From contig BDGG01000007.1 in NCBI GenBank assembly GCA_001949185.1, positions 569,401 to 633,400 of the forward strand: a stretch of DNA of 64,000 bases. Reading direction: 5' to 3'. The first letter of the stretch is position 1, and each line of letters begins with the position of its first letter. The DNA is from Ramazzottius varieornatus (taxonomy: Eukaryota; Animalia; Tardigrada). The notes beneath the pieces are model-generated. The model was not told the origin of the DNA, ran no database searches, and saw nothing but the letters and a program-made list of their open reading frames with translations. A program made the position numbers and the translations under genes. Positions 100-44,209 of the stretch are shown here, piece by piece.

Positions 100-2218
100 G
101 TTCCGGCAGACGCTGAAAGATGATCCACACTTTCTTCAGAAGAAAGTGAAAGAATACCTGCAAGATAACCCTCACCACCTGACGCTAATCATGCAGCCCA
201 ACGCACTTTACGAAGAGCTGATCAAGGGAAAGGAAGCCGAGCTCCTGGCTGCCAAAACGAAAGACGTGGATGAAGCCAGGAGGGAACAGCTAGCGAAAGA
301 AGCTGAAGAACTCCTCGAAGAACAGAACAAGAAGCCCGATGTCTCGGTTCTTCCTACGCTGAAGATTACGGATATCGAGAAAAGCCTGCCTGGGAGCGAC
401 ATCGAACGAGTGCAGTTCAACCATACCCAGGTACAACAAAATCTCGCAAATTGAAAATCAAAGAAAATTTGACGCAAGCCAAAGCATCCAAAAAAGACGC
501 ACTTAATTTTTATCTTCGAAAATTCGAGAAAGATTCAATCTGATTTCCTTTCTACGCTAAAACCTTCTATATCACAATATTTGCTGTTTAAAAATTTTTA
601 AATTCTAGTTTGATTTTAGGTGTTGTGTGTCAGGGCGCCGACGAACGGTGTGACGTACTTCCGGTCGATGATTAGTACCGAGAAGCTCGACGAAGCCCTT
701 CTTCCCTACGTCCCGCTCTTCTGTACAATTGCCACCAGGATGGGCGCTGGTGACATGGACTACAGACAGCTTTCACAAAAGATCGAGTCCAAGACGGGTG
801 GGCTGTCGGTGTCCGACCACACTAGCCACTACTTCGCTTCGACGGAAAAGTTCGAACAAGGCATCGTCCTGGGCTCGTATTGTCTGGACAGGAACATCTC
901 CGAAATGTTCGGACTGTGGAAAGACATCTTCAACAGAATACGCCTGGACGATATGGAACAGTTCGGGGTGTTGGTCAAGCAGGTCGCTGCGGATCTGGCG
1001 AGCGGGCTGGCTGACAACGGCCATGCTTATGCTATGGGTAAAGTAACTATAACCTTAGAAACGTCGGCTACAGACTCGACAAGATTCGTTTCCTAAACTG
1101 GCGCACGTTTTCAAAGTTATTGGCTGAAAGAGTGCGCCACCTGGAAAACTGTTATTGCTCAGTTTGTAATATTTCCTCAAACTGGCGCACATCCTCGTGA
1201 TAGGCTGAAAGCAGGCGCCACTGGAAGTCGCGATCTTGTCCAGTTTGTTTGCCGCTTTGCCAATTGGCTTTCGGGATAATTTTCTTCGCAGTACCGCGAT
1301 GCATAAACTCATGCCGGGCGGGTTTTAGGTTACTCGGCCGCGTCACTAAGGCCCGCCGGAAAACTCCGTGAAGAATGGAGCGGCATCTCCCAAGTCCATC
1401 TGATGAAAGACGTGGGTGAGTCGACCGACTTGACACCCACACTAGGCAAGATGCGGGCCATAGCCTCCCACCTTCTCTCCAACGGTCGGATGCGTTGTTC
1501 CCTCAACGCCACACCTGACACCATGCACGGTGCCCAAGAAGAGCTCCAGAACTTCCTGGAGACCATCTCCCACAGTCCGGAAGACCAGCATCTGGTCACC
1601 GACCAAACCTTCACTCCTTCGTCCAAAGAGACCCATTTGACGTTTCCTTTCGCCGTACACTACGCTTCTCGTTCCTACCCTATCCCCTCTTTCTCAGAAG
1701 ACGAGTACGCTTCCTCTAGGTTACTGGCTAAAATACTTAGCTCCAAGTTCCTCCATAGGGAGATCCGAGAGAAAGGTGGGGCGTATGGCGGTGGTGCGCG
1801 AGTGAGCCACAATGGTCTCTTTCAGTTCTATTCGTACAGAGACCCCAAGAACCTCGAGACGTTTGAAGCTTTCGACAAATCAATAGACTGGGCTGTCAAG
1901 GGCGAGTTCTCGTTACAGGATATTGACGAGGCCAAGCTATCGGTCTTTAGTGAAGTGGATAAGCCTGTCGCGCCAGGTGATAAGGGAAAGCGAGAGTTTA
2001 TCTTTCATGTTGGTGATGCGTTGTTCCAAGAACATAGGGAAAGGCTGCTGAAGGTCGATAAGGACCAGCTGGTTGATACCGCAAAGACCTTCTTGAAGGA
2101 CGCCAAGACGGTCGTGTCGACGATGCTCGGACCACCGAATGACGTGATGGAAAAGAAAGGATGGACGGTCCTTCCGGGTGCGGGTGATAAAGAACCGGTG
2201 AAACCCTGTTCAAGGTAA
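100..2218 (+). CDS. PITRM1: Mitochondrial presequence protease (M16C pitrilysin family), 3' exons; gene starts upstream of the window
   Basis: Exons 100-430, 620-1037 and 1329-2218 join in frame at GT/AG sites. Motifs match PreP/Cym1: LPTLKITDI, APTNGVTYFR, IESKTGGLS, FLHREIREKGGAYGGG, FYSYRDPK, DIDEAKLSVFSEVDKPVAP. Confidence 0.93.
1092..1226. repeat. Two imperfect ~55-nt direct repeats, each with an internal hairpin, in a PITRM1 intron
   Basis: cctaaactggcgcac...ggctgaaagagtgcgccacctggaa (1092-1146) and cctcaaactggcgcac...ggctgaaagcaggcgccactggaa (1175-1226). Confidence 0.6.
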
Positions 2219-2687: not shown

Positions 2688-4780
2688 ATGGCCCGTTTCA
2701 CTGTCTTGTGCGCGATCGCGTTTTTGGCGGCTTGTGGCTCGCTGCTGGCGGATGGTGCTTTGATGATGTTCGACGACGAAGTATCGAATAATCTGATTCG
2801 TTGGCCGACCGATCCCAAGAGCCAGTTTAAGCCTGGGTCAAGCGGAGTCCGACCTTCGTGGGCCGAAGCCCGAGTCAAAATCGCTTATGAAATCTCGACC
2901 AAAATCCGTACGTCGGTGTGTTCGTCTTGATAACCTAGTCCGATAAATAATAATGTAGTATGCTATATTTATCTGATTTTAGCACAAGCTGACCAACGCA
3001 GAATCACCAATGCAATGGACAAACTCGAGGACATAACGCGAAACTGTATTCAGTTCGACACCTTTACAGATGCTCCTGGTGCAGGCTTTTGGCATGCCCA
3101 CCCTGTAAAAATCGTCCCCGAGACAGTCGTCTGCACCACCTTCAACGGCAAAAACAAGGCTTCAACCGGGCAGAACATGAAAATGTTCAGTAGCCAGACA
3201 GAGAAAGGCGAATGTCTCACGCAGCCGCGTGACACTGTTCGGCTGCTCTTAAATCTGCTGGGTTTGGGCAACGAGTATCAGCGAACTGATCGACGCGCAA
3301 ACCTTCAAATGCATCCCGATCCAACAAACCAGGCCGACAATTCTTTGACAGGTGGTAGTGGCAATTTCGTGCTAGGCGAGAATGCTCATATTAGTACTGG
3401 CAACCCTTTCGACATTCACTCCATCACGATGGTAAACGGGGACCGTTTTACGAAGCCGGGCACTCAGGCATTCGGCCGACGGGATACCGGGTCTCCGACT
3501 TTTGCCAGTGACCCGTCCGTCGTTAAACTCAGCTGGCAGGACTGCGAAAACTTGAATACACTATACAGATGCCGTCTGGACTGTGATAACTCCGATGGTA
3601 ATTTTTCCAGCAGCTACCGCATTGAATTCAAATTACTCTGGCGCTGTGATATTCATGACTGTTTCAGTGTTTACACCGTTCGACGACGTCGCATCATCCA
3701 AACTGCTCAAACCTAATAAGATTGTCTCGAACCTGAACTGCTGGGATTCGACCGATTTGGACGGCGATGTGCCGGCAGGCCTGGGCTTTCTCGGGAATTT
3801 GCAGGTTAGTAATCTGTTCTGAATACGAAAAGCTGACGATGTAAGTTCTCTTGTGGGGAGAACCAGTTAACATAGTACAAGCGTTTCTGTCTCTCGAATA
3901 AGACAATAGTATCCATCTTGTTTCAGCCGGTAGACGACTCGGTTTTGCCAAACAAACTGGACTTTCAAACGGACGACGCAGGAAGCCTCAGTTTCACAGT
4001 TGTCGGACCAACATCGGCTAGTACCAGTAGGGACGTCGCGGTATCGCTTCGGAGAAAACGGTCCACCGGACTGTTTGGTCCTAACAACAAAATAGTTGTA
4101 ACAGGAAAGAACAGCACTGCAGGAAACGTGCAGACATACATAGAGGATGAGATTGGTGTCGAACTGAACTGCCTTCCCCAATTCCAATTCAACGGGATTA
4201 CTCTTGAATGTGGACCAGAGCAGGGTGTCGGTACAAGCGCCACCGACTGCACGTCTGACTCGACGAAGCCAATCAATTCATTTCCCCAGCCTTGCCAAGG
4301 CGATACATTCGAACGTTTATGGTTGGGGCCTTTCGTGGTAAAACTGATCTGCGTTTTATTTTATTCCGAAGCCTCTCCTCATGCTTTTGATTCCTACAGG
4401 TGACTGATCCTGACTTCAACAATGTCAGTTTCGCTCCTCAGTTCCGCTCTGTGGGTGTTTTTATTGGAGAGGCAGCCGTGCCTTCTTTCATGTGGACGTG
4501 GGAGCCTGTTGCACACCCGACCGCGTTGATCGGTTATGTCGTCAAGATTAATTCGACACCTCTTCCCATAAATGCCACCATCACCGTCAGCCTATCTGTG
4601 GTAGACATATCGTCGGCGATGTATGGAGTAAACATTCCGCGCCCAGAGCCTGCCAAGCAAGACACCGTCAAAGGTGTACCCGTTATCAAGACCTTGACGG
4701 CTACCTTCAAAGTGAACTGTTTAGCTGCCCGTGACTTGAACAAACTTCCGTTTCGAAAGGTCAATCGCGGTCGTCTTTGA
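2688..4780 (+). CDS. Secreted astacin (M12A)-like pseudo-protease A with unknown C-terminal domain
   Basis: Exons 2688-2907, 2983-3597, 3668-3804, 3927-4337, 4400-4780 join in frame. Signal peptide MARFTVLCAIAFLAACGSLLADG. Astacin landmarks: AMDKLEDITRNCIQF, C..., RLLLNLLGLGNEYQRTDR (for HExxHxxGxxHExxRxDR), PFDIHSITMV (for YDYxSIMHY), LSWQDCENLNTLYRC. Confidence 0.85.
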
Positions 4781-5928
4781 ACAGCAGCAGTTGCAAGAAA
4801 CGAAAGCATAAATGTATGTTCAGGTCTCTTCGAATTTGTTGACTGGCAAAAGTCCCGCGCGACAATCCGCAAACTGCTACAGTACTAGTTCTTTTTAGTA
4901 TGCGGACAAAAAAACGCGTCTCGCCAATAAATTTGCCCGAATCACATTGCGGTGTTAAGACGTTTTAATGATTCTGCGTGAGGCGAATGTGGATCTTTTA
5001 GCCTGTGTACGCATCTAATAGATCAGTCCATGACACCCTCTGCAGAGGTGTTACCAATGTGCTACAAGGGTGCAAAATTATACCACGGCGTAACTACGCC
5101 TATAATGTCGGATACAACAGAGGTCTTGCCATCACCTCGCATTTTGCCAACACGTTAATCTGAGTGGTAATAGTGGAAAACGGAGACTTAGCAGACTACA
5201 CGGACGAAAAATGATGTCACAGCGAACAATCACGACAGATTTCGGCACCAGGCTTAAAAATAACTTTGCCACCTTGGAACACCTAAAATATCATCTTTGA
5301 GCATTCCTCGGTCCTTCTCTATCGGCTTATTTTCACACGACAACAGGGCACACGCTGACAGGCGGACGTCAGCTCGACAACGGGTGGGTCGCCGAACAAG
5401 GTAATGCAGGGAAACGGATGGACGGTTTGCCGGGCGGTGGCGACAAATGGCTGACGAAACCAATGCTAGTCAGAACAAGAAAAATTCTCGCCTGCGGCTC
5501 GCTCTGTAACGTGGAGGGTCGCACGCTTCGTGGAGTGTAGTGATTGATCCATCACCTGTGCGTAGGGCACCCGAGAGCCGCTCTTTCTCGCCAATACCGG
5601 GGACGCATTTTGACCGGATATTATTCGTACACCTCCTCGACCAAATTTTGTCATAGCTCCAATCTACAACTCTCCCACAGAAAACGGGACCACACTACAT
5701 TCCAGTCAAAAACGATGAGAAAGCAGTACCTGCGCCCCACCCTTCTTCCCTCTTTTACGCAGGGTTGACCTTCTCGAAAAGCCAAAGACTGAAGCACGAA
5801 GGCCTGCCAGCTGACAGACAGACTCTCGTTCCTCGGGCAAACCATTCGTTGTGAATTATCCACAAAAACGCACGAACATGAAATACCAGCGATTTCATAA
5901 ACTCAGGTTATCTGTCACAAACAGACAT

Positions 5929-6448
5929 CGGCGGCCCGTCTAGTAAATTTGCCAGTAAAGACACCCACTACTGAAAAATTATGATCTGTCGATGACGTAA
6001 ATTTTACAGTGAACCAGAAGTATGATGACGTAACCAGGTGGGAAAAATTAATTTTTCAAATTTGATTTGGGGCGATATTGGCGGATGTCAACCTGAAGCT
6101 TAATCAGACTAATCTTCCAGTGTTTACGTGCTTTTTTTTCCCAACACTTTTCGCCTGTATATAGTTCTCTCGATAAGCTCATTGCGATGTCCGAATGCAG
6201 AGACCATCTGGGTCGGTTTCTTTTCGGGGGGTTTCTTGTCTGCGTTCTTCCTCCCACAAAAAAAATTATTTTGCGTGTTGTGAGTGTGCGGTGCATGAAC
6301 TTCTCAAATAAAGGCCAAGTTTCAAAACTGGAACTTTTGGAAGGTTGCGTCATCAGATTTTACTTGTACTCAAAAATCACGACATCCACAGGTCGTACAT
6401 GTGGGCGACATCTGTCTTTACTGCGAAAATATTTTGTAGGGCCGCCAC
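5929..6448. mobile_element. Degenerate inverted-repeat (MITE-like) element
   Basis: Left ggcggccc...cagtaaagaca (~5929-5962) and right tgtctttactgc...gggccgcc (~6413-6447) are imperfect reverse complements. Inner pair tgatgacgtaacc / ggttgcgtcatca. Confidence 0.45.
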
Positions 6449-6461
6449 TGCAAACAGAGCC

Positions 6462-6623
6462 CGGCCAAGCTAGGCCGCGNNNNNNNNNNNNNNNNNNNNN
6501 NNNNNNNNNNNNNNNNNNNNNNNNNNNNNATGATATACCGACGCGTTCACCAAAACTGTTAATCGAGTGAAAATTTTTCATCAGAGTGACGTCGAAAAAC
6601 CTGGGCGCGGCCTACCTCGGCCG
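6462..6623. mobile_element. Small inverted-repeat element spanning an assembly gap
   Basis: cggccaagctaggccgcg before the N run (6480-6529) and cgcggcctacctcggccg at ~6606-6623. Confidence 0.45.
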
Positions 6624-7411
6624 AAATCTGTTCACGAATTCATACAGCTGCCAATTGTAAATGGCCTTCGCCTGACTTCGGACGGTTTACTAAGCCTCGT
6701 TGCAGTGTTATAAACGAGTTTCAATTAGCTTGATTAAACGCAAAAAAATGTAAATTGCTACACTGTATACCGGCAAGCACATTTCATATTTTTCTGAAAA
6801 AACCTGGTCCCATCCGAGCGTGTCGGGGATATGTTGCTGCGATTTTTGTTCAAACGTTTCTTCTTAAACTGGACCCTCTTTGACGGTCCACGACCTCGTC
6901 AGGAGTTTTATTCGGGTTATATTAGTATAGAAGTGGGATAAATGGAGCAGTGCAACAGTTTTTGCTGTTAGGACGTTTGTGAAGTACAGTACGACAAAGT
7001 ATTCAAGTAGGGTATGATTTGTTTTTATGTCCTGTCGTGGTTTTGAGCTCAACCGTCGCCTTTCAATAGAATGAATAGATTGTAGTTGCGCAATTCGTTT
7101 TTAGACACATTGACGCTCACAATATCGCACACTAAACGTGACTGCATGCCAGACGACCAAGCGTGCTGAACGGGTTATGGAAAGGAGAAGGGAAGACGGA
7201 AACGAGAACGTAGATTATGACGCGGAAGCAGTTAAACCAACGATAAGATTACAAGTCTGATTTACATACGACAAACACCATATAAATATATTCGATACAT
7301 AGTGTTACCGAAGGCAGGCCAGAGATATTGGTTTTTCGTGTTTGATGAGAAACATTTTCGGAAAGGTAGCTATGTGATTTTGTTTAGTTATCCAGTTAAT
7401 ACTATAAAAAC

Positions 7412-9768
7412 ATGTCGCGATCAACGGCGTTGTGGGTCGCTGTTGTCTGCTTATGCTACTTGGTTTTGTCATCGCAGGGTGCTCTGCAGATGTTCAAGGA
7501 TGAGGTGAACCCTACTAATCATTTGCAGCCGTGGCCGATTGATTTCAGAGCCGCGCAAGCGTCTGATGGAACGTGGACAAGTGCTCGAGTCAAGATTGCT
7601 TGGGAAAAAAGCGGAAGTTACTGTGAGTATCGTACCATCTCACGGATACAGCTCCCGTGTTGTAGGCAATGAGTTCCTACTAATCACAATATTCTGCAGC
7701 GACTGCGGACTGGGCAAAGATCCAGAACGCGCTTACAAAGATCAAAACGGACACGAAGAACTGCATCGCCTTTGAACAGCGCTCCTCGGCACCTGATGCA
7801 CCGTTTTGGCATGCACACCCTTTACGAATCACCACAGATTCTGTACTGTGCAAAACCTTCAACGGCAAGTACACCGGACCAACTTCACCTGGCACAGCTG
7901 GACAGATTATAAACATTTTCGGCAGCAACACTCTAAAAGGCGAATGTCTGACGCAACCACGCGACACCCTTCGTATAATTATGAACACGTTAGGCATCGC
8001 CAATGACTACCAGCGACCGGATCGTGACAATTTTCTGAAAGTGCCCGTAGATCCCGTAACCGTTGCACACCCAACCTTGACAGGTGGCAGTGCCCCCTAT
8101 CTGCTTGGCAAAAACTCTCATATTAGTACGCTTGATCCATTCGATGTCAAGTCAATCACCATGGTCGACGGCAGTCGTTTCGCTCGTGAAGGGGAGTCGA
8201 CCTTCACGCAACGCGACGGGTCCCCCATCTGGGGCAGCAGCACGACTGACCTAAGCCAAGTCAAAATGAGCAGGATGGACTGCGAAAATCTAGACTCACT
8301 GTATGGATGCAACATTGACTGCAGCTCTGCAGGTATCCCTAAGCATACTCGAAACATATTAATTCAGCCGAACATCTGAACTCCGCGAGTTAGATCCGAT
8401 TTCAAATCCTTTCGCAGTTTTTCTACCGTCCGAGCTGGTTGGTCCTCTTAAATCGCTCAAGCCACCCAAGCTGTTTTCGAACCTCAATTGTTGGCAAGCA
8501 GCAGGTGCTTTCACCCAGGACGACATTGGTAAAGGTTTGGGTTTTCTCGGAAATGTCCAGGTAAGAAGCGGGTGTATCGCGCAGAATTTTAGCAGCCCAT
8601 AACCTCAATCAGCATGGTTTACAGTTCGCTCGTTTGAAATGCAGGACACGATCTGACGGTCTAAGTTTGAGGTCATCCATACGTAAGCCGAGGAACATGC
8701 CAAGCTGTGTTGTAACTCGACTAATCAAGTAGTCAGCTGATCAAATCACAGCTGAGCGAGTGATTTGAGGCAGCTTGAGTAACAATACTGATTTTCCGCT
8801 TCTGACATCGTTGGTTCCAGTCCCACAGTTTGAGCGAGCGGACTGTACCCATACGTTTGCTGCAGCCATAGTATTTATCAGTCCCACAAGTTCTAATGTC
8901 GATGTTCACTCCCGACAGCCGGAAGACAGCATGATCATTCCCAACAAACTAACCTGGTCTCACACATCGACGAACGGTAATTTTTTTGTGGCGGGACCAC
9001 CACCACCACCAAGCACGAGCAGAGACATCGCCGTATTTCTTCGTGAAAAGAAAATCGAAGGAATGTTTGGCCTCGATGACAAGATCACCATTACGGCAGT
9101 TGATGCCACCGATAATAACCGCGAAGTTATAAACCACGACCTGGGTATCGAGCTCAACTGCCTACCCAAGTTTAGCTTTGATGGCAGAGCGCTGGTCTGT
9201 GGTGGGCCGAGTCAGGGTTTCGGTACCAACGCAGTCGACTGCACAGTTGGCGCACCAACACCGCTTAACACGAATCCTCAGTCCTGTCAAGGTGGATCGG
9301 TCAGCACTATTTCCCTGGGACCTTTTATGGTGAGACTGCGTGCCCCGAGTGAGCTATGGATACTGTGCTTAATGAATGGCTTACAACTTCCGCATATTTT
9401 AGGTATCTGATCCGGACTTTACAGTACTGCCCGGGTCCGTCCCGCAGTTTACTTCTGTGAGTGTCTTTGTCGGTGGAGCAGCACAGCCGTCTCCTAACTG
9501 GGTGTGGATTTCTGTTCCATCGCCGGCCGCCCTTTACGGATACGTGGTCAAGACTGACGCGAGTACTATCCCCGTCAGCTCCGCCATTACCGTCCGACTA
9601 TCAGTGGCAGATATTTCCTCGGCTCTAGCAGCTTTGCCGAATAGAAGGTCTCCAGGAAAAGCGGCACCCGTTACCAAGACATTGACGGCTTCCTTCAGAG
9701 TAACTTGCGCAACATTCCGCAGTCCTTATACCTCTTTACTTTGGGGCGCTAATCGCTTTCGCGTCTGA
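7412..9768 (+). CDS. Secreted astacin-like pseudo-protease B, tandem paralog of A
   Basis: Exons 7412-7622, 7700-8332, 8418-8560, 8919-9329, 9403-9768, with the same intron positions and phases as A. Signal peptide MSRSTALWVAVVCLCYLVLSSQG. Motifs RIIMNTLGIANDYQRPDRDNFLKV, PFDVKSITMV, MSRMDCENLDSLYGC. Shares C-terminal blocks with A (PNKL, STSRDIAV, G(I/V)ELNCLP, LGPF, GYVVK, KTLTA). Confidence 0.85.
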
Positions 9769-10015: not shown

Positions 10016-10936
10016 TCATGGACTGGTCTTCACACATCCGGGCACTGCACAAATAGTAGGACATGTCAGTGTAGGATGAAGCAAACCCGTCCCTGTATAC
10101 GTGCAACCTGGCGGAGGTGCGCCAGTCAACTGCAGACATTGCTCGACGTTCGTCGCCGGTATTGGGAGCGTTGCACAGTTGACGAATGGGGAAACACTGC
10201 AGGCGCTCAGGGTTGCACACGAAAACGGTGTGATGGTCCCTGTTCCGACATATGAAGTCCCACTTGAGGGGGCACACTGTTTTTCAATGCATAGTGCGAT
10301 GAAGGCAGCTGGCGACAACGTGGTCGTAGTGGTGGGGGGCGTGGTGGTGGCGATTGTGGTGGGGGTAGTAACAGGACGAGCAGCTGTAGTCGTGGTTGTA
10401 GTCCGTGTGGTGGTGGTAGTTGGTGCACGAGTGGTGGTGATGGCTGCGGCACTGGAGGGTGTGAACAGGTAATTCGAGTCACCGACAAAGACGTCCAGGT
10501 TGCTTTGGTCAGTTATTCTGTAGTTTCCGCTGGTTAGGTAGTCGGCGCTGGGCTCTTGGAAGAAGCTCAAAACCGGCAGTGGCTGCACGGACTGATCGAT
10601 GGGTATGTTCGAGCAGTCCAGGCGGCAGTTGAGGACGACATTGTTGATGGGACTGAAGAGGTTCGGCACATAGGAGCAACCAAACGGTGGGAACTGACCA
10701 GTCAGAGCGAAGCACCGATCGGTAAACTGCGCACTTGGTTGAGGAAGGTTGTTAACGCTCTGGAAGAAAAACGGGTTGAAAAGTTGGGAGTTGATTTGAG
10801 AAAATGCCTGTCTGCGTTTTCGAGAAAGATGAACTTCCGGTAGATCATTACTACTTGATTCCGCAAATTGCTCGATGACGGCGACGAGCGAAAACACCAA
10901 CGCTAAAACTCCGAAAAATATCCTGAAGCAGGTCAT
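10016..10936 (-). CDS. Secreted 306-aa protein with furin-type site, Cys-rich repeats and a Thr/Pro mucin-like linker
   Basis: Single ORF. Signal peptide MTCFRIFFGVLALVFSLVAVI, then SRKRR|Q, a Thr-rich stretch TTTRAPTTTTT... and Cys-rich modules on both sides of it. Confidence 0.8.
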   Translation of the reverse strand: MTCFRIFFGVLALVFSLVAVIEQFAESSSNDLPEVHLSRKRRQAFSQINSQLFNPFFFQSVNNLPQPSAQFTDRCFALTGQFPPFGCSYVPNLFSPINNVVLNCRLDCSNIPIDQSVQPLPVLSFFQEPSADYLTSGNYRITDQSNLDVFVGDSNYLFTPSSAAAITTTRAPTTTTTRTTTTTTAARPVTTPTTIATTTPPTTTTTLSPAAFIALCIEKQCAPSSGTSYVGTGTITPFSCATLSACSVSPFVNCATLPIPATNVEQCLQLTGAPPPGCTYTGTGLLHPTLTCPTICAVPGCVKTSP

Positions 10937-13678: not shown

Positions 13679-15391
13679 TTATCGGCAGACGTTATTTATG
13701 CTACTCTGCTGCGAGCGAACTTCCGTGATACCGTAAGTGCCACTCCGGTCTCTCCATGGTAGCGCGTTCATGCTCCTGAGCTTTGCGGAAGATCTTTCTG
13801 GCCACACCATGGTCACCGTTGACGCTGACTTCATCCCGTTCTTTTGCCAGACATGTATGGGGAAACTGCGACCTTGACCGACGTCAGCCTTCTCCACCCC
13901 AACCGGCTCCTCCCAATGAAAGTTCCTCGACCAGTCAATCACACTTTTGAACACCACATCAAAGACCGGTACAATGCCATTGATTGATCCACTGTCTAAT
14001 TTATCTCTGGGCAAAATCTTAATCTCGCGAAAACTAGAGAAGGTTCTTCGCGGTTGGTCGGGTACCAGCAGTTCTTTTACAAATGTTATTCGTTCGTTTT
14101 CCACCGCTTCAATTTCAGCTGAATCCGCCCAAAATACCACCGCTTCAGACAACTTCACCCCCGTTCTTCTTCGATATCGATGTAGACAGCCTAACGCCGG
14201 GTTACCTGATTGGGGTAGTTTATCGGTGGTCAATTTCCTGCCTTGCAGGACTGTCGACCCACGTTCGGTTCCTTGCGAGTGAAACCACACTTTCGATCGA
14301 TCAACTGTTTTCACTTCCACATTACCGGATATCACAGTTGACCAGTGGATATTGGGCCATTTTTCTTTCAATGAGCTGGCTAGTTTGGTGGCTAGCATCT
14401 GACCAGCGTTGATCTTCACGTCCGAGTTATCACGGAGGAAGCCGTAGACGTGTGCGCCGAGTAGACAACACTGTGAATCGTTTGATGCTCCACATTTCGC
14501 GTGCTTGCGATCACCGCAGGCCTCAAAGAGAAAGTGGCATTTGAATCGCGCTGAAGCCTTGGCAAATTCCTCCATGATGTCACTCCGCTTCTTGTCGAGG
14601 TGTTGTAGCTCGAGCGCGACGGTGTGACTGAGCTCGTCTTCCGCCTTTGGGTACAGGTCATCAAGGGTGATGGATCGACGCTGATCAACTGCCGTCGCTT
14701 CGCCGACGTGTTTGGCTAGCCGGCTCCATACTGAATGGTCCTCCACTTCAAGTAACGCAGTACTCTTTCGATCCTTGCATCTTTCTCGTCCATCTTCGAG
14801 CTTCAGCCGCAAATCAAACGCTCGTAAGAAACACGCCATTAATAAAATACATTCGATCCTCTTTCTCCACAGTTCGAATTTCTCAACGTTTCTTGGAGCT
14901 TGGCAAGCCACAGCAATACGATCCAATAGCGTATCCCCAAATTGTCCTTGCTTGATTTGCTGATGAAGGAATGCAATGACTCCGTGTGGCTCGTGCTTCT
15001 TACAGGCGCGCTGGAACTCACGTTTCCGGAAGTCAACCGATGGAGATTCGATGTAGTAACAAAAAGCTTCGTACGCCATTTGAATTTTATGGAGCAAAGG
15101 GTTGAGTTCAAGAAACAAGGCTTGTTCGACCGTCGAAGACTGGATACTTTTCGTGGCATCTTGAATGGTAGCCTCCATAAAGTGTTTCAAGTCGATCAGT
15201 TCCTTGTTGAGGCTGTCACCGAACACAGCTTGAATGTTAGCCTCCAGTTGTTTCCGGTCGTCCCAGAACGGTCCGTTTTCCTGTAGAGTACGAGAGGCGG
15301 CTGTGGAGGACTTTTCGACGGCGGAGATACCCAGTCGGACCACTAGGTCGACGAGGCCGGTCCAGGCTACGTCGATCAAAAACACCGCCAT
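13679..15391 (-). CDS. Intronless ~570-aa protein, rapunzel-like helical family (tentative)
   Basis: Long uninterrupted ORF from ATG 15391. The helical N-half (ELIDLKHFM...KIQMAYEAF...FRKREF...FGDTLLDRI...ILLMACFLRAF) and LKEKWPNIHWSTV resemble the rapunzel pattern as I recall it. Confidence 0.6.
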   Translation of the reverse strand: MAVFLIDVAWTGLVDLVVRLGISAVEKSSTAASRTLQENGPFWDDRKQLEANIQAVFGDSLNKELIDLKHFMEATIQDATKSIQSSTVEQALFLELNPLLHKIQMAYEAFCYYIESPSVDFRKREFQRACKKHEPHGVIAFLHQQIKQGQFGDTLLDRIAVACQAPRNVEKFELWRKRIECILLMACFLRAFDLRLKLEDGRERCKDRKSTALLEVEDHSVWSRLAKHVGEATAVDQRRSITLDDLYPKAEDELSHTVALELQHLDKKRSDIMEEFAKASARFKCHFLFEACGDRKHAKCGASNDSQCCLLGAHVYGFLRDNSDVKINAGQMLATKLASSLKEKWPNIHWSTVISGNVEVKTVDRSKVWFHSQGTERGSTVLQGRKLTTDKLPQSGNPALGCLHRYRRRTGVKLSEAVVFWADSAEIEAVENERITFVKELLVPDQPRRTFSSFREIKILPRDKLDSGSINGIVPVFDVVFKSVIDWSRNFHWEEPVGVEKADVGQGRSFPIHVWQKNGMKSASTVTMVWPERSSAKLRSMNALPWRDRSGTYGITEVRSQQSSINNVCR

Positions 15392-15686
15392 CTGTTTCTC
15401 TAGTCCATACTTGCAAGACACTTTGCAATTTCATACCTTCATACATACATGTAAACGAGCAATATATCTTTCTTTTTCTTGCCATACTTGAGACCTCACA
15501 AACCGAAACTATTTATCGCTGCGACGAGAGTTTGTTCAAGATAGCGATTGTAAAGTCAATATGACCAAATTTGCTTTGTTGGCATGATGTAATGATCACG
15601 TGCCGTGAGAACGATAGCGTACCTTGGGTAAGTCGGCTACAAAGTCGCCCTCTCTATGACTGACGTACCATGACTGACGCACAAGG

Positions 15687-23335: not shown

Positions 23336-26300
23336 ATGAAGTGGATGGACCCAAAGATGCAGAACTCTGCCTGTATGCCGTTCCGAATAACCGACGCTGT
23401 TTTCTTGCGGATCCTATTCTTCTTCTCACTGATAATCGACGCGAAAGTCACGGGTACATGGTCGAGGGAAGGACACAGTCCTGCTAGAGAAGACGGTAAG
23501 CGATCGATAAGTCTCATTGTAACTATGTCTGCTGCGGGAATGCATCTTTTGTTGTCCAGGCCAACCCGAAAAACGAAAACAGATTCAAAACTTTCCAGTG
23601 AGAGAAAATGGTTGACGTTTTGTGCGATCGTTGTAAATTTCCCTAGACCCTGACCTACATTTTCTGGAGTGAAGACCCACCTGCAATCGGAAAGAGGCGT
23701 TAATGGATAGCTTGATGACTTCTGATGGATGGGAGCCCACTGTTAGTTCTCTTGGGACCAAACTTAATACAAAAGGTTTCAGCGGGTGCGTGAGTAAACG
23801 TGCGTGAATGAAAATGTCCATCTATCCCAATTAGGCAGAGCGTTTCCTGACCCTGAAAGAAGGCAACAGCGTGTAATGTAACTGGCAATCGTGCCAAGGG
23901 GATGCTGTGAAGTGATGGCGCTTGGGGAATGTGCGCCGGAATGTGCCGGAATGTTGTGACGCTGTTCCTCGTAGTGTGAGGGCTGTTTGTGAACGAAATC
24001 CGACACCGTGATTCAGGCTAATTGGACTCACAAGTAACACTTGAAAGATAGGATAAGTCAAACTTACGACGAACCAAACGTAGGAAAGCGTCGTAATCTG
24101 TTCTTGTTCTCGCTCTTGTAGTCCAGGTTCAATCATATTACTGTAACATTATGGAAAAAACGTGTTAATTGCTTTGTCGATCGACCATAAACTTCTTCGT
24201 CTGTCAGATTCCATCTCTGCTGTAGTAACTCCTGATCCTGTTCAATTTGAAGCGGCAGCCTGATTTTTCCAGCAATTTAACGAAGACGGATGGTCCAACA
24301 AACTATCATGTGTCACAATTATTGTGTCAAAAGGGAGAAAACAATTCCCACGGTTTGAACCATGAACTTTCCCACAAAACGGTAGTTGCCGCTTGAAATC
24401 GAATCGTTCCGAAGCTTTTCCTCAACTTGACAAGCTCAAGAGCAAACTGGGTTAATTATACATTTTAGCGTATGAATGGGGCGGTGTGGAGGAGCACCCT
24501 GCTGCGTTACCAGTGGGGAACTCCAAATTATGGGCGTTGGAGGATGAGGAAGTGGTACCGCTGGAATGCCTGCCTCATGAGTTTCCCTGTGGTCAATTTC
24601 GCTGTATTGATCGCGTTCGGCTATGCGACACCAAAGTGGACTGTCCAGATCGCAGCGATGAAGACCCGGACACGTGTCGAGCACATACGTGTCCAGCTAC
24701 GCACTTCAAGTGTCATGATGGCTTCTGTGTGCCGATTGAACATATCTGCGATTACACGGCGGACTGTCCCGATGGATCAGACGAAGTGCAGTGCCGTAAG
24801 TTTGTCAACATTTTCACTCTAGTTTTTTCTACCGCACAATCGTCAAAAATAATTGTATCCTCTACACGTTGAACATTAACAGCTTCGACAACTTTATCCT
24901 CTGTTCGGTACGATATAGTTTACTGGGCTATAACTTAAAGTTCGAGCTGCTATTCGGGTTGTTTTTTCAAGTGCCGGTAATAAACTTTTAAGGACGAAGA
25001 TAGGATGCAGAAAATCTGTCAGAATTTTGTGTTTGGGTTTTGATAAGTAATTTGTTCCTTTCTCCACAGATTACAGGAAGTGCTGGCACGGCGAGTGGCA
25101 ATGTCGGAACCAACAGTGCATCAACGAGGTGTTTCTGTGTGATGGACAGAGTGATTGTAAGGATAACTCGGATGAATTCAACTGTACTGTTGAGAGTAAG
25201 TGAAAGCATCATCAATTTGCAATCTTGACACATATTTTGACTGCGCGTCGTTGTGCAAGATGCTCCGGTAATCGATGGGCTCGTCGCGTACGCCGAGCAG
25301 CCTAATCCGGCTAGATGGTGCCCAATCGCTCGTCAACATCTGTTTTGGGTTAACGATCTGGCTAACGAACGTGGGGGATAGCGAGCTTCCTAAATGACTG
25401 CAATTCCGCTCTTCATAGCCAAGGATAATTAACCATTATGACTTTATGTTTTGTAGATTTTATTACCTGCGATCATGACAAGCACGTCCATATTAGCCGG
25501 AAGTGTGATGGCAATGCTGACTGTAACGACCAAGTAAGTACCTTAGCTGGAATGCGCAGCTTCTGTACCACCCCTCCCCCTCGCTCAGATCCGTGGTTCG
25601 GAAAAAAAAGCGGTGACATTTTGAACGTCCCGATTGGGGACACTTTTCTCATGACAAGGCCGAAATTCAATCAATAAGCTTTCACTCAATCAATCCTCAG
25701 TACATATGACGAAATCAGATGGATAACTTATGGATGGTTCGTTTTCCTATGATATTTTTATGGGCAGCATAATGTAGGACGATCATGTGTGTGTGTGTGT
25801 GTGTGTGTGTTTCAGATGGACGAAACTGACTGTGGGCTCTGCAGAACCGCTCAGTTTCAATGCCCGAATGGTCGTTGCATCCCCCAAGCCCAGGTCTGCG
25901 ATTCTGTCTGCGACTGTCAACCTTCGTGCGGTGACGAGCGAGCCAACTGCGCGGACTACTATGAAGGTCTTCCAGGTCTCGCCGTCTGCCGGAAGCGGAA
26001 AAGCATTGCGTGTAACAAGAGCAACCGCTGCATTCGTCAAGGTATGGATTCAATTAGGTTCAAAGTACATATTTTATGTAGATATTCCACTCGGAAATCA
26101 GGACAGGAAGAACCAGTCCTACCAACAATATTCCCAATGCAAGAAAACGAGAAGTCACGAGCATGGCTTAATCGATTCAAATATATCCGGTTTTGCAGAG
26201 TTTATCTGCGACGGAAGTGATGATTGCCAGGATGGCGGGACGGATGAATTTCAATGCCACACTTCTCCTTCAGCTTCCGTCACTTTTTCGAATCTCTCTA

Positions 26301-29300
26301 CAGTCACCACCGGGTTCCGTTGTTCCGATGGCCGATACCTTCCTGTTCATACGAAGTGTGACCTACAACGACACTGTCTCCTCGGAGAGGACGAGCGAGT
26401 TTGCCGCCTTTCGCCTTGTTCAGCCAATCAATCAACTTGTCTCTCCGGCGAATGCATCGACTCGGCCCTTCTTTGTAACGGTGTACCCGACTGTCGGGAC
26501 AACAGCGACGAACTGAACTGCCTCGAATACGAATGCCCACCTGATAAATTTAAATGTGCGACATCCGGACAATGTGTCAATCAAGCCAAAGTCTGCGACT
26601 TCAACATCGACTGTACTCTCGACAGTTCTGATGAACCGGATAACTGTACATACAAGCATACACCTTGTGACATTTTAGAATTTCGTTGTGACAACGGCCA
26701 GTGTATCAGCAGCGAATACAGATGCCGTGTAAGCGTTGATTCGTTGAAACACGGTTGTCTGGACGAAAGCCACATCAAGGACTGCGGTGGTGTGCAGTGT
26801 GACGGTGTGCAGTGGTTGAAGTGTCGGAACGGACCATGTTACCACGTGTCATTGCAGTGTAACGGGCTGCCAGATTGTTACAAAGCGAGTCGGACCTGGA
26901 CGGACGAAGAGGGGTGTCCATTTCAGTGTGCGAGTGCGGCTAAATGTGTGTGCATGGACGTGACGATGGAGTGCCGGGACACGGGATTGACGGCGTTACC
27001 GGAGTATGTCGAGCCCAGTATCACCAAGTACCGTCTGTCCGGGAACAGACTGAACCATACGTTGAGTGTCAGATCGTTTGAAGGCTTGCATAGATTGACC
27101 TTGTTGGATTTGTCGGCGAATGACATTATGGAGCTACCGAACGGCCGACCGTTTGCGACGCTATGGCAGTTGAGAGTATTGGTGTTGCGGAAGAACGGGA
27201 TATCGAGGTTGAGGAAGGAGCTATTTTATGGACTAGCTAACGTGCGTGTCTTGGACTTGGCAGAAAACTACATTGAGGTAAGTCTCAAAGCGTTTCGTTT
27301 TTATCTATACACGCACCAAGGGCAAGTTTGGAACAGTAAAACGTTTGGAACAAGCGGTAGAGACGGCAAGGGGAGAATTCGACCGTAGAAAATTGTCAAA
27401 TTGTATATTGGTATAAATCGCACGCGTAAGTGCGGACTTCCGTTCCGCTGTTTTGGAATCGCCTGTTCCAAATGTTCTCTTTGTGCGTGTACCAAGGAAA
27501 CTCGTAGAAAATTATCAGATCATTGTCGTCGATGAATCCACAAGTATTGAAAAACAAACCAACACTACTGCAAAAAGTTATCGCGAATAACGGAAATCCC
27601 AGTGTAATTTTTCTATCGAGGATACCCATTATCTTATTTGTGGCGTAATAGATTGTGGAGGAACGAGCGTTCACCGGGTTGTCAAGTCTCCCCCAGCTGG
27701 ACCTCAGCCGTCAACTCATCTCCCACCTCCCAGCCGCCTCGTTCCTAGGGCTTCGCAGCCTTCTCTCCCTGAACCTGTCCGGCAACCCACTGCAATACTT
27801 CGACGTCGACACTTTTCTCGGTCTACCTCAACTCGTTACCCTCGACTTGTCTAGCAGTGTCCATTGGAACGCCGTTCGATTTACCGGCGAAGCCTTTCGG
27901 CACCTTCCCGCACTGACGCATCTCTACACTTCCGACGCAAGGCTCTGCTGCTCCATCGGAGGGAAAGTTCCCCATTGCTACCCAAAGCTCGACCACTTTT
28001 CGTCGTGCTCCGACTTAATGTCCAACAGGATACTGAGAACGTCCATATGGCTGATGGGGACCATTGCAGTAGTGGCCAACGCCGTGGTGATCGTCTGGCG
28101 GTTGCCTGGTGTGAGACGATCGAGGATACATGCTTTCCTGATAATCAATCTGGCTGTTGGGGATATTATCATGGGCGTGTACCTGCTGATTATTGCTGGG
28201 GCGGACTTGCATTACCGCGGGACGTATATTTTCTACTATGACGTGTGGAAAAGTAGTGGGTGGTGCAAAGCTGCAGGTGTCTTCTCGACTGTGTCCAGGT
28301 GAGATTCAAGCACTAATTTCCAGGTAGTGATGAACGACTTTAGGGCCGTGAAATTTTTTCCACTGTGATCTGAAGATGGTTATAACAAATTCGACGTGAG
28401 ATACTGATGCAAGGCCATTCCCTTTCTCAACGAATTGTCACTCCCTTCACTGATACAGTACTTCAGATCGGGTCATGAGTGCAATGGTCTGCTCCGGTTT
28501 TCAGCGAACTGAGCATATTCACCCTTCTTCTCATTACACTGGACCGACTACTGACCATACTTCTTCCATTCCACATCGACCTTCGTCTAAGCTACGCCTC
28601 CGCTCGCATCGCGGTCCTTCTCCTATGGATATCCGTCTGGACTATCGCCTTGATACCTCTCTTGCCGCTGCCATATTTCCAAAACTTCTACGGACGATCG
28701 GGCGTCTGTCTGGCTTTGCATATTACACCTGACCGCTCACCCGGTTGGGAATACGCCGTCTTCATCTTCCTTGGTCTCAACATGCTGGCATGTGTCCTGA
28801 TCATTCTGTCGTATGCCGGCATGTACGGTGTGGCTTTGAGAACTCATCGAGCTGTAGAACCTAGTCCGCAAAAAAGCCGCCAAGAAGCTCGGCTAGCCAG
28901 AAGGATGGTTCTCATCGTACTGACCAGTCTTGCCTGTTACCTACCGCTGTCCATTATGAGCCTACTTGCCTTGGCTGGAGTCTCCATGCCAGAAGAAGTA
29001 TCGCCCAGACCATCGCTACAGATAAAATGTAAAAACTGAAATTTACTGCGTGAATTGCAGGTTTACTCGTGGGTCGCCGTTTTCATGTTACCGGTGAACG
29101 CAGCACTGAATCCATTGCTGTACACCATGTCCACACGACCCTTCAAGCGGCACATCCAGACCAGTATTACCGACAGGGCAGCGCACTTGCGCGAGTCCCT
29201 GCTGGCTTCCATGAGCTCCAGCTCCCGCCGACGGCGCTCTTCGGCGTCGACCACTTCGGGGAGTGGCCAAGCGGTAAGTAAAGGAAACTCACTTATTCCC

Positions 29301-38212: not shown

Positions 38213-38403
38213 ATAAGTCCGGTAAGATAAACCAGACCGGAACAGCGCAGATAGGTTGTTGGGTAAATCGGGCGTAAATGTTTTCCTGGTACTGTTGTTT
38301 TCTCGTAAGCAACGCTTATCGAAGAACCTTGATGGGCCATTTTCTTTGCTTACAATCTCGACAGAACAAGAGAGTGCGACGTCTTGATGGAACTAACCGG
38401 ACA
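38213..38403 (+). pseudogene. Duplicated last intron and last exon fragment of the adjacent GPCR
   Basis: agtccggtaag...aaaccagac...gcttatcgaagaacctt...cgatctcgaca-like...aagagagt...ggaactaaccggac aligns to 39403-39596; the acceptor AG is lost. Confidence 0.75.
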
Positions 38404-38599
38404 TAGGATACAGTTTCCGCTTTCCAGGATCTGCGTCAAGTTCATTATATCGAGACACGTTCATGTTCATGTTCTGGCGCAGTTGTTCACTAGAGTCAGA
38501 TTTTTCCGCGTTGTCATTACCCGACCTTCTACATATTACCGAATTGATTGGCTCTGCTCTGTGCCGATTTTTCCCGTGACACTATCAAAACTTCCAGGA

Positions 38600-39635
38600 A
38601 TGAATAACACGACATTTTCCTCCAATACAGAACTCGGCTGGGTTGGTGTCAACGCAGTCCTTCATTGCTTTGCTCTTCTGACCAACTTGACCTTTGTCAT
38701 GGTGGCTGTCATTGATCGAACAGGTCTTGCTGGACCTCGGCTTCTCATTCTAAACCTGGCAGTGTGCGGCCTTATCCTCTCTGCCGGTTGGTATCCAGCC
38801 ACAACCTTCATGGCTCAACGCTGGCAGCCTGACCCTCCGCCTTCTTGCTCATTCTTCGCAGGCACCATCTTCTTCGTCACTGCCACCAACTGGTCCGATG
38901 TCCCGCTGGCTATCAACCGCATCGTGGCCATCTGTTTCCCACTCTACTATCGCTCGTTCAACACCCGGCTAGTTTCCTGCGTCATGATCATTTTGAGCTG
39001 GGTCGTTCCGCTGGCGCTGGTCCTTCTGACGTTCTTTAGAATTGGCGCGGCTTTTGTTGGTGCGCCATATGGTACATGCGTCATTCGAGCTCTTCGGCCT
39101 TTCGGAAAAATTTACAGTTTTGTTCCGGCAGTCATTCCGTTCGCGCTAGTTGGATTGGCGTGCTGTGAGCTGTTCACAGCGGCCCACCTGAAGACAAGGG
39201 TTTCCAATAAGTTGTCTACCAGATCGAAGCGGCTACTCAAGCGACGGTTGAATATTGCTACAGCCATGTTGGCTACCTTGATGTGGCACGTGCTGATGTC
39301 CTTTCCGATCATTTACGTGTCATATGGCTTGCCGCAGGTCATTTCACAGAAACCATGGCTGGGCAACGTAATACGAGGCTGCACCACGCTGGAATTTGCG
39401 ATTAGTCCGGTAAGTTAAACCAGACAGAGATAACGAAAAGATTGATAGATTATTGGGTGAATTTGGCGTTAATGTTTTGCAGGTACTGTTTCTTCTCGTC
39501 AGCAAAGCTTATCGAAGAACCTTAATGCGCCATCCTCTGTGTTCACGATCTCGACAAAATAAGAGAGTAGGACCTCTCAGTGGAACTAACCGGACTTACA
39601 ATCCATCTGAGCTAGGCTTGGCACGGATAAGATAG
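38600..39635 (+). CDS. Orphan rhodopsin-family (class A) GPCR
   Basis: Exons 38600-39409 and 39483-39635. Seven hydrophobic segments, N-terminal NNT sequon, LILNLAV, LAINRIVAICFPLYYR (DRY equivalent), SW, SPVLFLLVSKAYRR. Confidence 0.85.
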
Positions 39636-41001: not shown

Positions 41002-43219
41002 ATGAGGGCTCCCCTCTGCGTTCTTGTCTTATGGGTAGGTTTTCTGAGTTGTTTCCTCTGTTTCGACGATGGACACAGAAAAGCGAAACTTGGCCCAGCT
41101 GCAATCGAGGGGAAAATCTCAGGCTCATCAACGACATGACTTTGGCGGAAAAGCTCGGCCAACTGCAACAGCTTTCGGGAACGTGGTATGGTGAGGTGGC
41201 AGACTACGACATCCCTCCAATAAAGCAAGGCCTTGCCGGCTCTATCCTCAACGTCCACGGGGCGGCTAGGACCAACCAGATTCAACGTTGGGCTCTGGAG
41301 TCGCGACTAAAAATTCCAGTTCTTATTGCCGTCGACGTCATTCACGGATTTCGTACACTGTTTCCCATCCCTCTGGATGAAACGGCCAGTTGGGACCTCG
41401 AAGCCGTAGAGCAGGCAGCTGCCATCGCAGCAGCCGAAGCGCGCTCTGTTGGAATCCATTGGACCTTTGCGCCCATGTTTGACGTCATGCGGGATCCTCG
41501 CTGGAGTCGCATCGTGGAAGGATCTGGTGAAGATGTTCATCTGGGAAACTTGATGGCTAAAGCTCGAATCCGTGGATTCCAGGTCAGTTGTCAGGACAGT
41601 CGAGGTCAAGGTGAATACACTCTAATGTCACGCTTCGGTGTGTTTCAGGGTACGGATTACAGTGCGCCCGATAGGGTCCTGGCCTGCGCCAAGCACTTTG
41701 CTGCCTACGGAGCAGCTGAGGCCGGTCGGGATTACAATGGTGCCGACATGAGCGAACGAAGACTGCGAGAAATCTACCTCCCTCCATTCAAGGCCGCCGT
41801 CGACGCCGGTGTCGGGTCTTTCATGACCGCATTCAACGACCTCAGTGGTGTGCCGGCAACGGATAACAAGTTCTTACTCACCAAAGTCTTACGTGACGAA
41901 TGGAAGTTTGACGGACTGGTAGTGTACGACTGGGATGCAGTGTACGAACTGATAAACCATCAGTATGCCACAAATAAGAGCGAAGCAGCCATGCACGCCG
42001 TCAACGCCGGAACCGACATGGAGATGAACAGTCGCACATATGTTACCCACGGCGCCCAGCTCATCCAGTCGGGCAAAGTGTCCACTGGGACGGTCAACAC
42101 TGCTGTACGAAACATCGTGCGAATTAAATTCCGTTTGGAACTGTTTGATAACTCTTTCACTGATGAAACACTCGAAAGCCAGACGCTTTTCAAAGAAAAA
42201 TTTGTGGCCGCTGCGAGGAACATTACAGCTCGCACGATGGTCCTCTTGAAGAACGAGAACAACCTTCTACCCGTTAGTACAACCATTGGAAAGCTCGCCG
42301 TGATTGGTGGACTGGCTGCGGATAAGTATGAGACCACCGACCACTGGCCTGGCGACGTTCACTGGCAAAATTTTGTGACTATGCTGGATGGTATCATGAC
42401 CAAGTTGGGAGTTACCAGTACCAATGGTCAAGTCACTTACGCAGAAGGTTGTGACGCGTACTGCTCGAATACTTTGACGTTCGACAACGCCGTTCGTGTC
42501 GCACGAGCAGCTGACTTCGTGGTGGTGGCCGTTGGTGAGCCCAGAGAATATTCAGGGGAAGCCGGCTAAATGGCTAACATGGACTACCCGGACATCACCT
42601 AGAACTGGTCCAGCGAGTGCATAAAACCGGGAAACCATACGCTGTGGTGCTGGTCAACGGTCGACCGATGACGATTGAATGGCTGGCGGAAAATGCGCTA
42701 GCCATTCTGGTCACGTGGCGCTCCGGCTCGATGGGTGGTCACGCGGTGGCGGATGTGCTGTTCGGAGACGTGAATCCGAGTGGCAAGTTACCAATGTCGT
42801 TTCCTCGAAATGTCGGCCAGATTCCAGTCCATTATGACCACAAGAACACGGGAAGACCGATTGACAAAGCAAGCGGATCGCTGACTGAACGCTACCGCTA
42901 TCTCAATACGCCGAACTCGCCGTTGTATCCTTTCGGCTTTGGTCTGAGCTACAGGACTTTCGTAGTCGAGCACTTGCAGTTATATGTCCCGACTGTAGCA
43001 GCGGACCAGGACGTGCGGTTGGCAGTGACTGTAAGGAATGCCGAACAGCGAGACGGTCAAGAAGTGGTGCAAGTGCATGACGACTGGCGCTGGAAAGTGG
43101 AAGCCGGTGTATTTGAAATTTACGTAGGTGGCAACAGTGACGCCAGCCTGAAGGCCACTCTGACCGTCGCAAACACCCTTCGTGAACCTGTCGAGCACCC
43201 TGCAGCCTCTCCAGCCTGA
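41002..43219 (+). pseudogene. GH3 beta-glucosidase (BglX-like) pseudogene
   Basis: Signal peptide from ATG 41002 is out of frame with LAEKLGQL (frameshift near 41120). Intron 41583-41648. VVSDW changed to VVYDW. TAA at 42567-42569 plus a frameshift. Large deletion in the C-terminal Fn3-like domain (VVQV joins HDDWRW). Confidence 0.9.
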
Positions 43220-44049: not shown

Positions 44050-44209
44050 CTTACAGGGTGTCCCGGTTACTCCCACGAGTGGATGACTTTCTTCGCTTTG
44101 ACATTCAGAGCACTGGGCAGAAATTACATGGCGTTAACACCAATCACTGGCTATCGCAATGCTTTGTTTTGATTAGACAATCAAAATCGCCTGGTCCATG
44201 ATCAGCTTA
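44050..44209 (-). pseudogene. Degenerate 28S rRNA fragment (~160 nt)
   Basis: Minus strand ggaccagg...tgtctaatcaaaacaaagcattgcgat...gtgttaacgccatgtaatttctgcccagtgctctgaatgtcaaagcgaagaaa...gggagtaac...gacaccctgtaag matches the conserved LSU core TGTCTAATTAAAACAAAGCATTGCGATGG...TTTCTGCCCAGTGCTCTGAATGTCAAAGTGAAGAAA...GGGAGTAACTATGACTCTCTTAAG. No other rDNA is nearby. Confidence 0.85.

Follow-up and report, generated by a model that had tools for sequence, protein, structure and literature searches.

In the tardigrade Ramazzottius varieornatus, two adjacent genes, A (RvY_12070, 2688-4780) and B (RvY_12071, 7412-9768), encode intact astacin homologues in which the catalytic zinc site has been replaced, and they belong to a family of at least 58 such dead representatives that has so far been found only in tardigrades. 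Both genes lie in a 64,000-nucleotide (nt) stretch of contig BDGG01000007.1 (positions 569,401 to 633,400), referred to here as the window; coordinates are window positions, and features are on the plus strand unless otherwise indicated. The reading that we favour, with some reserve, is that A and B are old tandem duplicates of tardigrade-restricted astacin pseudopeptidases that have been repurposed as soluble recognition or ligand-trap proteins.

At the site of the astacin zinc-binding consensus HExxHxxGxxHE, gene A encodes RLLLNLLGLGNE (3240-3275; amino acids (aa) 160-171) and gene B encodes RIIMNTLGIAND (7972-8007; aa 162-173), the latter being identical at the protein level in an orthologous contig (L001, see below). 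The RxDR motif follows as RTDR in A (3282-3293) and RPDR in B (8014-8025), and the Met-turn SxMHY is altered to SITMV in both (3420-3434 and 8152-8166). Profile alignments with solved astacins placed R, N and N on H92, H96 and H102, a hydrophobic residue on E93, and T, M and V on M147, H148 and Y149, so that the methionine of SITMV lies one column past the Met-turn methionine. All that remains of HExxHxxGxxHE in A and B is the Gly plus a Glu or Asp at the last position. The Met-turn with its Tyr zinc ligand is likewise missing, Thr occupying the Met column and Val the Tyr column. The columns aligned with the astacin disulfides C42-C198 and C64-C84 carry Cys in A (residues 95, 270, 124 and 151), in B and in 52-57 of the 58 dead members, and two additional cysteines are located near the end of the astacin domain of both proteins. 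The first-pass annotation of this DNA had reported these motif replacements, the loss of the three His ligands, of the catalytic Glu and of the Tyr, and the retention of RxDR and of the astacin cysteines. Every replacement was found where it had been placed, and the losses and retentions were confirmed by the motif coordinates and the aligned columns.

The absence of an obvious propeptide, also reported there, holds as well. No FxGD aspartate-switch propeptide was found in A or B, in which the signal peptide is followed within ~15 residues by a mature-type ..WP.. segment, whereas the true astacins of the family match list described below carry an aspartate-switch propeptide of the form FEGDI, FQGDM or FQGDV. 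Most dead members have hardly any sequence between the signal peptide and a mature-type N-terminus of the form A-V-L-N-x-D-x-R-Y-x-x-W-P (ALMMFDDEVSNNLIRWP in A). Glu103 contacts the mature N-terminus in astacins, and this contact presumably persists in the dead family, Glu103 being retained. Two further candidate motifs were rejected. The MFDDE/MFKDE segment past the signal peptide is not a remnant of FxGD, since it aligns with the mature-type N-terminus of the family, and FWHAHP, common to A and B, is not a new metal site, as it reads FWYSHP in the B-type orthologue and is absent from other relatives.

A and B are true astacin homologues, as indicated by Pfam, by a profile built from dead members only and by the predicted fold. 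Full-length searches and folding were carried out with the database proteins P0001 for A and P0091 (isoform 2) for B, and exons were also searched one by one. The Pfam Astacin model (PF01400) scored 27.0 bits on full-length A and 30.8 bits on the B isoform, above the gathering cut-off of 22.5, and 19.2 and 28.8 bits, respectively, on exon 2 alone. In A the match covers residues 58-270 of P0001, within an astacin-like domain (approximately aa 38-278; 2799-3597, with intron 1 at 2908-2982 inside) that was modelled with a predicted local distance difference test (pLDDT) score of ~90. A profile made from 50 dead members retrieved medaka HCE-1 (expectation value (E) 2.2e-20), crayfish astacin (2.7e-15) and BMP1 (3e-15); a two-sequence profile of exon 2 from A and B had no match among solved structures, and the larger family profiles were needed. 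The AlphaFold models had a mean pLDDT of 75.7 for A and 78.7 for B, and the top Foldseek matches of both models were to astacin and hatching enzymes (1AST, 3LQB and 3VTG, TMt 0.71-0.76), BMP1, TLL1 and meprins (E 1e-9 to 1e-11 and TMt 0.70-0.76 overall; TMt 0.74 for the gene A model against 1AST), pointing to an astacin fold. Thus, both the Pfam search and the structure prediction proposed with the first-pass annotation came out in favour of its assignment.

Compared with the astacins (MEROPS M12A, PF01400; crayfish astacin, HCE-1/ZHE1, BMP1/tolloid and meprins), A and B have in common the fold, the two disulfide Cys pairs, Gly99, Glu103, the RxDRD block, the FD..S motif of the Met-turn region, a signal peptide and a multidomain extracellular architecture. 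They differ from them in lacking the zinc His residues, the catalytic Glu, Tyr149 and the aspartate-switch propeptide, in having Thr in the Met147 column and an extra Cys pair (C261 and C274), in the near-invariance of R156, which is not near-invariant in astacins, and in C-terminal domains that are not CUB, MAM, EGF or ShKT.

A hidden Markov model (HMM) search with exon 2 of A and B in 1.84 billion representative proteins (representatives at 50% clustering) returned 87 matches at E < 1e-3, most of them with a similar zinc-site replacement; true astacins with HExxHxxGxxH appeared only at E ~4e-8 and weaker. In the alignment of the matches, 58 of 67 sequences were dead, which sets the family at 58 representatives or more. 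Among these 58, the His92 column contained mostly R (33), K (16) or A (6), the His96 column N (34), H (9) or S (6), and the His102 column N (33), S (11) or D (5). The Glu93 column was hydrophobic in 56, Glu103 was retained in 54, Thr occupied the Met147 column in 57, and V, P or I was found in the Tyr149 column. Gly99, RxDR, the FD..S block and the cysteines are retained across the dead family, which also has near-invariant residues of its own, Arg156, Cys261 and Cys274. The pattern R-x3-N-x2-G-x2-N, to which the first-pass annotation had drawn attention as common to A and B, is indeed present in both but is not special to the pair. As 58 or more dead sequences have this pattern as their consensus, A and B have inherited it from an old ancestor and have not acquired it convergently. 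The maintained pseudo-enzyme family suggested there is real and much larger than the pair.

All 28 source-named proteins of the family match list came from R. varieornatus, Hypsibius exemplaris or Paramacrobiotus metropolitanus, and 27 of them were dead. The remaining one (P0029) scored 110.9 bits with Pfam Astacin, compared with 17.9-56.6 bits for the dead members tested; it lay outside the 67-sequence alignment and was not counted as dead. Matches without a source name were fragments on short metagenome or Logan contigs. By the match list of this one profile search, in which the named genomes are those of three tardigrades, the family appears so far to be confined to this phylum. Other dead tardigrade paralogues (RvY_02803, RvY_04544, RvY_15051 and RvY_16954; BV898_13567; LOC129597225 and LOC129597266) display the same replaced motif, an SITM Met-turn, the extra cysteines and no propeptide. 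BV898_13567, LOC129597225 and LOC129597266 share the C-terminal region with A and B, while most other dead paralogues have different C-terminal domains or none. Several dead members carry database names such as 'zinc metalloproteinase nas-15-like', 'astacin-like metalloendopeptidase', 'astacin-like metalloprotease toxin 3' and 'Metalloendopeptidase' (P0052, P0085/P0095/P0096 and P0094), with the zinc motif gone. In addition, among sequences from H. exemplaris and unnamed sources, one dead astacin was modelled with hemopexin repeats and an ANF-receptor domain (P0045), another with hemopexin repeats alone (P0077), and a third with P2X and carboxylesterase domains (P0056), which looks like a fused gene model.

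Both genes are intact. Gene A comprises exons 2688-2907, 2983-3597, 3668-3804, 3927-4337 and 4400-4780, with the stop TGA at 4778-4780, and gene B exons 7412-7622, 7700-8332, 8418-8560, 8919-9329 and 9403-9768, with the stop TGA at 9766-9768. When the exon models were rebuilt from the window sequence, all eight introns were GT..AG, with phases 1, 1, 0 and 0 in both genes, and each coding sequence measured 1764 nt, encoded 587 aa and contained one stop, the terminal one. The spliced translation of gene A is identical to P0001 (GenBank GAV01342.1 / RvY_12070, UniProt A0A1D1VI99); the database labels already on these genes are 'hypothetical protein' and 'Peptidase M12A domain-containing protein' (GenBank, UniProt). 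P0091 is the annotated isoform RvY_12071-2 and agrees with the gene B model from aa 22 on. Its alternative first exon (MRNIFGK, 7345-7365) is spliced to an internal acceptor at 7478, which removes the signal peptide, and its junction with exon 1 falls exactly on the predicted signal-peptide cleavage site. This isoform would yield a B protein without a signal peptide.

The predicted signal peptides comprise aa 1-23 in both proteins: ...LLADG/ALMM in A (2688-2756; mean Kyte-Doolittle hydropathy 2.34 over residues 4-20, with a helix at residues 2-20 in the AlphaFold model) and ...LSSQG/ALQM in B (7412-7480; mean 2.12), where the slash marks the cleavage site, derived in A by the -3/-1 rule and inferred in B as well. 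A hydrophobicity scan of both proteins revealed no transmembrane-grade segment downstream of the signal peptides, and A and B are probably secreted. The exon models, intron phases and hydrophobic N-termini are all in agreement with the earlier description of intact five-exon tandem genes with signal peptides. No third copy of A/B was present within the 64-kb window, and a word-index protein search with gene A gave no match beyond A and B. An assembly gap of 50 N (6480-6529) separates the two genes, 1.7 kb past the A stop and 0.9 kb ahead of the B ATG. No reading frame of A or B runs through this gap and no A- or B-like sequence adjoins it; thus, the intactness of the genes is unaffected and only their 2.6-kb physical adjacency depends on it. 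An inverted repeat of 27 nt (81% complementary; 6453-6479 and 6606-6632) is present on both sides of the gap and may be the cause of the assembly break. The second assembly gap of the window is located at 59617-59713.

A and B are under purifying selection and are not pseudogenes. The two proteins are 47% identical, with ~2.2-2.5 synonymous substitutions per site (dS, saturated), ~0.48 non-synonymous ones (dN) and an omega of at most ~0.2. The orthologous genomic sequence on Logan contig L001 (run SRR28173874) shares 92.6% identity with B over exon 1, intron 1 and exon 2. Comparison of 270 codons gave a dN of 0.04, a dS of 0.15-0.19, an omega of 0.20-0.30 and a pN/pS of 0.22 (Fisher p = 9e-9). 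The dN/dS analysis that had been suggested as a check thus indicates constraint both between B and L001 and between A and B. Two independent metagenome contigs carry a B-type gene at 60% identity whose exons 1-3 are intact. Maximum-likelihood analysis grouped A and B with such a B-type metagenome contig in one clade (100/99), with H. exemplaris BV898_13567 as its sister (97/94) and the Paramacrobiotus genes next, a topology that dates the A/B duplication after the split from Hypsibius and yet as old. The locus has one copy in H. exemplaris and a same-strand array of three in P. metropolitanus. The third tandem subfamily copy of the latter (L005 17834-20196, BHEN01000102.1), whose aligned pieces share 43-69% identity with LOC129597266, is annotated as a 323-aa product from 18631 only, probably a truncated model. 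The exon directly upstream of gene A (1403-2218, plus strand) encodes the C-terminal domain of presequence protease (PreP, M16C); the H. exemplaris orthologue has other neighbours, and synteny around A is therefore not conserved.

Past the astacin domain, both proteins are predicted to contain two beta-sandwich domains. In gene A, DSSP assigned them to approximately aa 290-450 and 452-575 of the model (3668-4777, with introns 3 and 4 inside; pLDDT 60-80), and the equivalent region of gene B (8418-9765, again with introns 3 and 4 inside) was modelled at pLDDT 70-90. No Pfam match was obtained for residues ~290-575 in A, B or any relative. In Foldseek, the modelled C-terminus of A resembled tandem cadherin/Ig-like domains (E ~1e-4) and that of B cadherin-23, RAGE and protocadherins (E ~1e-5). 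The region is homologous across Ramazzottius, Hypsibius and Paramacrobiotus, with an hmmsearch match to P0005 at 5e-9 and an hhalign comparison of the C-termini with Paramacrobiotus that gave a probability of 97% (E 1e-10, 194 columns).

The same module also occurs in a receptor tyrosine kinase. The partial RefSeq model LOC129602409 of P. metropolitanus (P0037; L006 211-12400, BHEN01000446.1) has a dead astacin domain and the homologous C-terminal region and extends beyond the second beta-sandwich into a strong transmembrane segment (Kyte-Doolittle 3.27, with KRAK after it) and a tyrosine kinase domain. This domain (PF07714, 239.9 bits) has GxGxxG, VAVK, HRDLAARN and DFG all intact and is nearest to the kinase domains of EGFR, FGFR, DDR, KIT and TIE2. 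The exon with which the last extracellular domain begins ('DPDG') follows a 7.4-kb intron and adjoins the transmembrane and kinase exons. This intron occupies the position of intron 4 in A and B, which makes it unlikely that two complete adjacent genes have simply been mis-joined. A 504-aa protein (P0018, isoform X2 of LOC129596832) contains the module without the kinase and shares 71% identity with the ectodomain of P0037. A dead-enzyme module serving as a receptor ectodomain would most simply be ligand-binding, and by analogy with this Paramacrobiotus gene model a binding, ligand-trap or decoy role is favoured for A and B as soluble proteins. The binding or decoy function suggested in the first-pass annotation thus gains indirect support.

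The mechanism that we propose would run as follows. A and B would be made with a signal peptide and without a latency propeptide. A disulfide-locked astacin domain, unable to hold catalytic zinc, would be followed by the two beta-sandwich domains. The basic side chain at position 92 may sit where the metal ion used to be bound and stabilise the fold, and the former substrate cleft would bind a protein or peptide ligand with no cleavage, A and B acting as soluble recognition or ligand-trap proteins. More tentatively, the astacin fold without its metal site may have become an extracellular recognition module specific to tardigrades, spread over dozens of genes, whose soluble and receptor tyrosine kinase ectodomain forms make up a receptor and ligand-trap system, a wider proposal that we regard as possible though somewhat improbable.

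Several points weigh against the reading that we favour. The kinase link has a single gene model behind it, a partial RefSeq entry from another genus that contains a 7.4-kb intron, and no astacin-kinase fusion was seen for Ramazzottius. The C-terminal domains resemble generic beta-sandwiches only, and Arg160 is presumed, not seen, to lie in the former zinc site. Nine true astacins were present within the AlphaFold input alignments and may bias the fold; since the Pfam score and the dead-only profile are independent of them, homology stands apart from this caveat. Finally, a single nucleotide is deleted from a GGGG run of L001 (L001 ~793, window 8231), and its open reading frame (ORF) ends 22 nt later. 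The deletion may be either a mistake of the assembly or a genuine frameshift in the species concerned; the 33 codons past it, with 6 non-synonymous and 1 synonymous changes, are too few to interpret.

Two other roles for an inactive astacin have to be considered, both of which we judge unlikely. First, A and B could be structural parts of the extracellular matrix (cuticle, egg shell or buccal apparatus), that is, scaffolds without a specific ligand. Their secreted-looking, disulfide-rich organization with tandem beta-sandwich domains would suit such a role, and active astacins work in the cuticle and in hatching of other ecdysozoans (PMC9848320). On the other hand, they show no low-complexity, repetitive or chitin-binding features and no Pfam chitin-binding or collagen match, and the kinase-linked relative speaks for recognition over bulk structure. 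Second, and with about the same modest likelihood, A and B could regulate the active astacins of the animal, the dead domain mimicking a live one and either occupying substrates or soaking up astacin inhibitors. The strong conservation of the cleft-forming scaffold and of the Met-turn region is in line with mimicry; active astacins also exist in tardigrades (PMC9848320, and the active sequences in our match list), and pseudopeptidases often regulate their active relatives (PMC11266112). However, the dead family outnumbers the recovered active astacins and is very diverse, a better fit to many partners than to mimicry of a few enzymes, and no inhibitor or substrate is known.

Residual hydrolase activity is much less probable than either of these roles. 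In this case the conserved Arg, Asn, Glu, Asp and Ser residues would have to provide a different metal site or a different chemistry, and the moderate conservation of polar residues at the former site, together with the newly near-invariant R156, is what such a proposal could build on. Against it, neither the metal ligands, all three of them, nor the general base nor Tyr149 has survived, and the positive charge of the side chain at position 92 is unfavourable to a bound metal. The residues at positions 92, 96 and 102 are variable, with A, G, S and P among them, which would be intolerable in a catalytic site, and D217 and S220 are invariant in active astacins too and hence structural. That A and B are decaying copies or annotation artefacts without function, for which one could cite the lack of any expression record found for A/B and the 1-nt deletion in L001, is the least credible explanation, given the intact 587-codon frames with canonical splice sites, the pN/pS of 0.22, the 47% amino-acid identity kept between A and B in spite of saturated dS, and the orthologues conserved in three genera.

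The ADAM pseudopeptidases (M12B: ADAM11/22/23 and unc-71; PMC11266112) provide a close parallel within known systems, as they are metzincin domains that have lost HExxH and serve as extracellular binding or receptor modules, and have an active-site helix with Gln, Ser or Asn replacements in a conserved domain (PMC11266112). They differ from A and B in belonging to another metzincin family with another architecture, in keeping the Met-turn Met and in being membrane proteins with disintegrin domains. In the carbonic-anhydrase-related proteins and in the dead carbonic anhydrase domain of the receptor tyrosine phosphatases gamma and zeta, the zinc His residues are replaced (one by Arg), and the proteins bind ligands and exist in soluble and receptor forms. 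The resemblance to A and B is one of logic only, the fold and family being unrelated and the receptor carrying a phosphatase instead of a kinase. MEROPS flags non-peptidase homologues in M12A generally, so that isolated dead astacins are not a new idea.

The first-pass annotation had described the pair as the best candidate for an undescribed system, which is only partly correct. The genes themselves are already in GenBank and UniProt; as for a description, no mention of RvY_12070, RvY_12071 or BV898_13567 was found in searchable papers or in the supplements of three papers, and no account of an inactive or pseudo-astacin family was found in the searched literature. A 2024 review of inactive metallopeptidases covers ADAM, M13, M14 and other pseudopeptidases and no astacin-type one (PMC11266112), and a 2023 astacin review cites tardigrade astacins without the word 'inactive' in its text. 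What is new here is the size of the family, its restriction to tardigrades, its coherent replacement motif, the fact that it has lost the propeptide, and the existence of a member linked to a kinase. The locus offers an entry point to a large astacin-derived family, whereas ADAM and carboxypeptidase pseudopeptidases are already well documented. If our interpretation is true, it represents a clean natural case of a zinc protease fold stabilised without metal and reused for recognition, it flags database names that wrongly imply protease activity, and it adds secreted tardigrade-specific proteins whose biology (moulting, feeding, egg or stress) is open to CRISPR in R. varieornatus.

Other features of the window were recorded as well. 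Two long ORFs downstream of gene B on the minus strand, 10016-10936 (306 aa) and 13679-15421 (580 aa), had no Pfam match. Further along, the ORF at 25787-27388 (plus strand) encodes three LDL-receptor class A repeats and leucine-rich repeats and that at 38384-39418 (plus strand) a rhodopsin-type seven-transmembrane region; together they resemble a relaxin/LGR-type receptor gene extending over >12 kb. A tandem pair of GH3 genes (41031-43219 and 44732-47217, both on the plus strand) consists of very long, nearly intron-free ORFs with GH3 N and C domains and an Fn3-like domain. GH3 is unusual in animals, and these genes may therefore have been horizontally acquired. Between them, on the minus strand (44030-44197), lies a lone fragment resembling eukaryotic large-subunit ribosomal RNA (Rfam RF02543, 70.9 bits, model positions 2121-2337).

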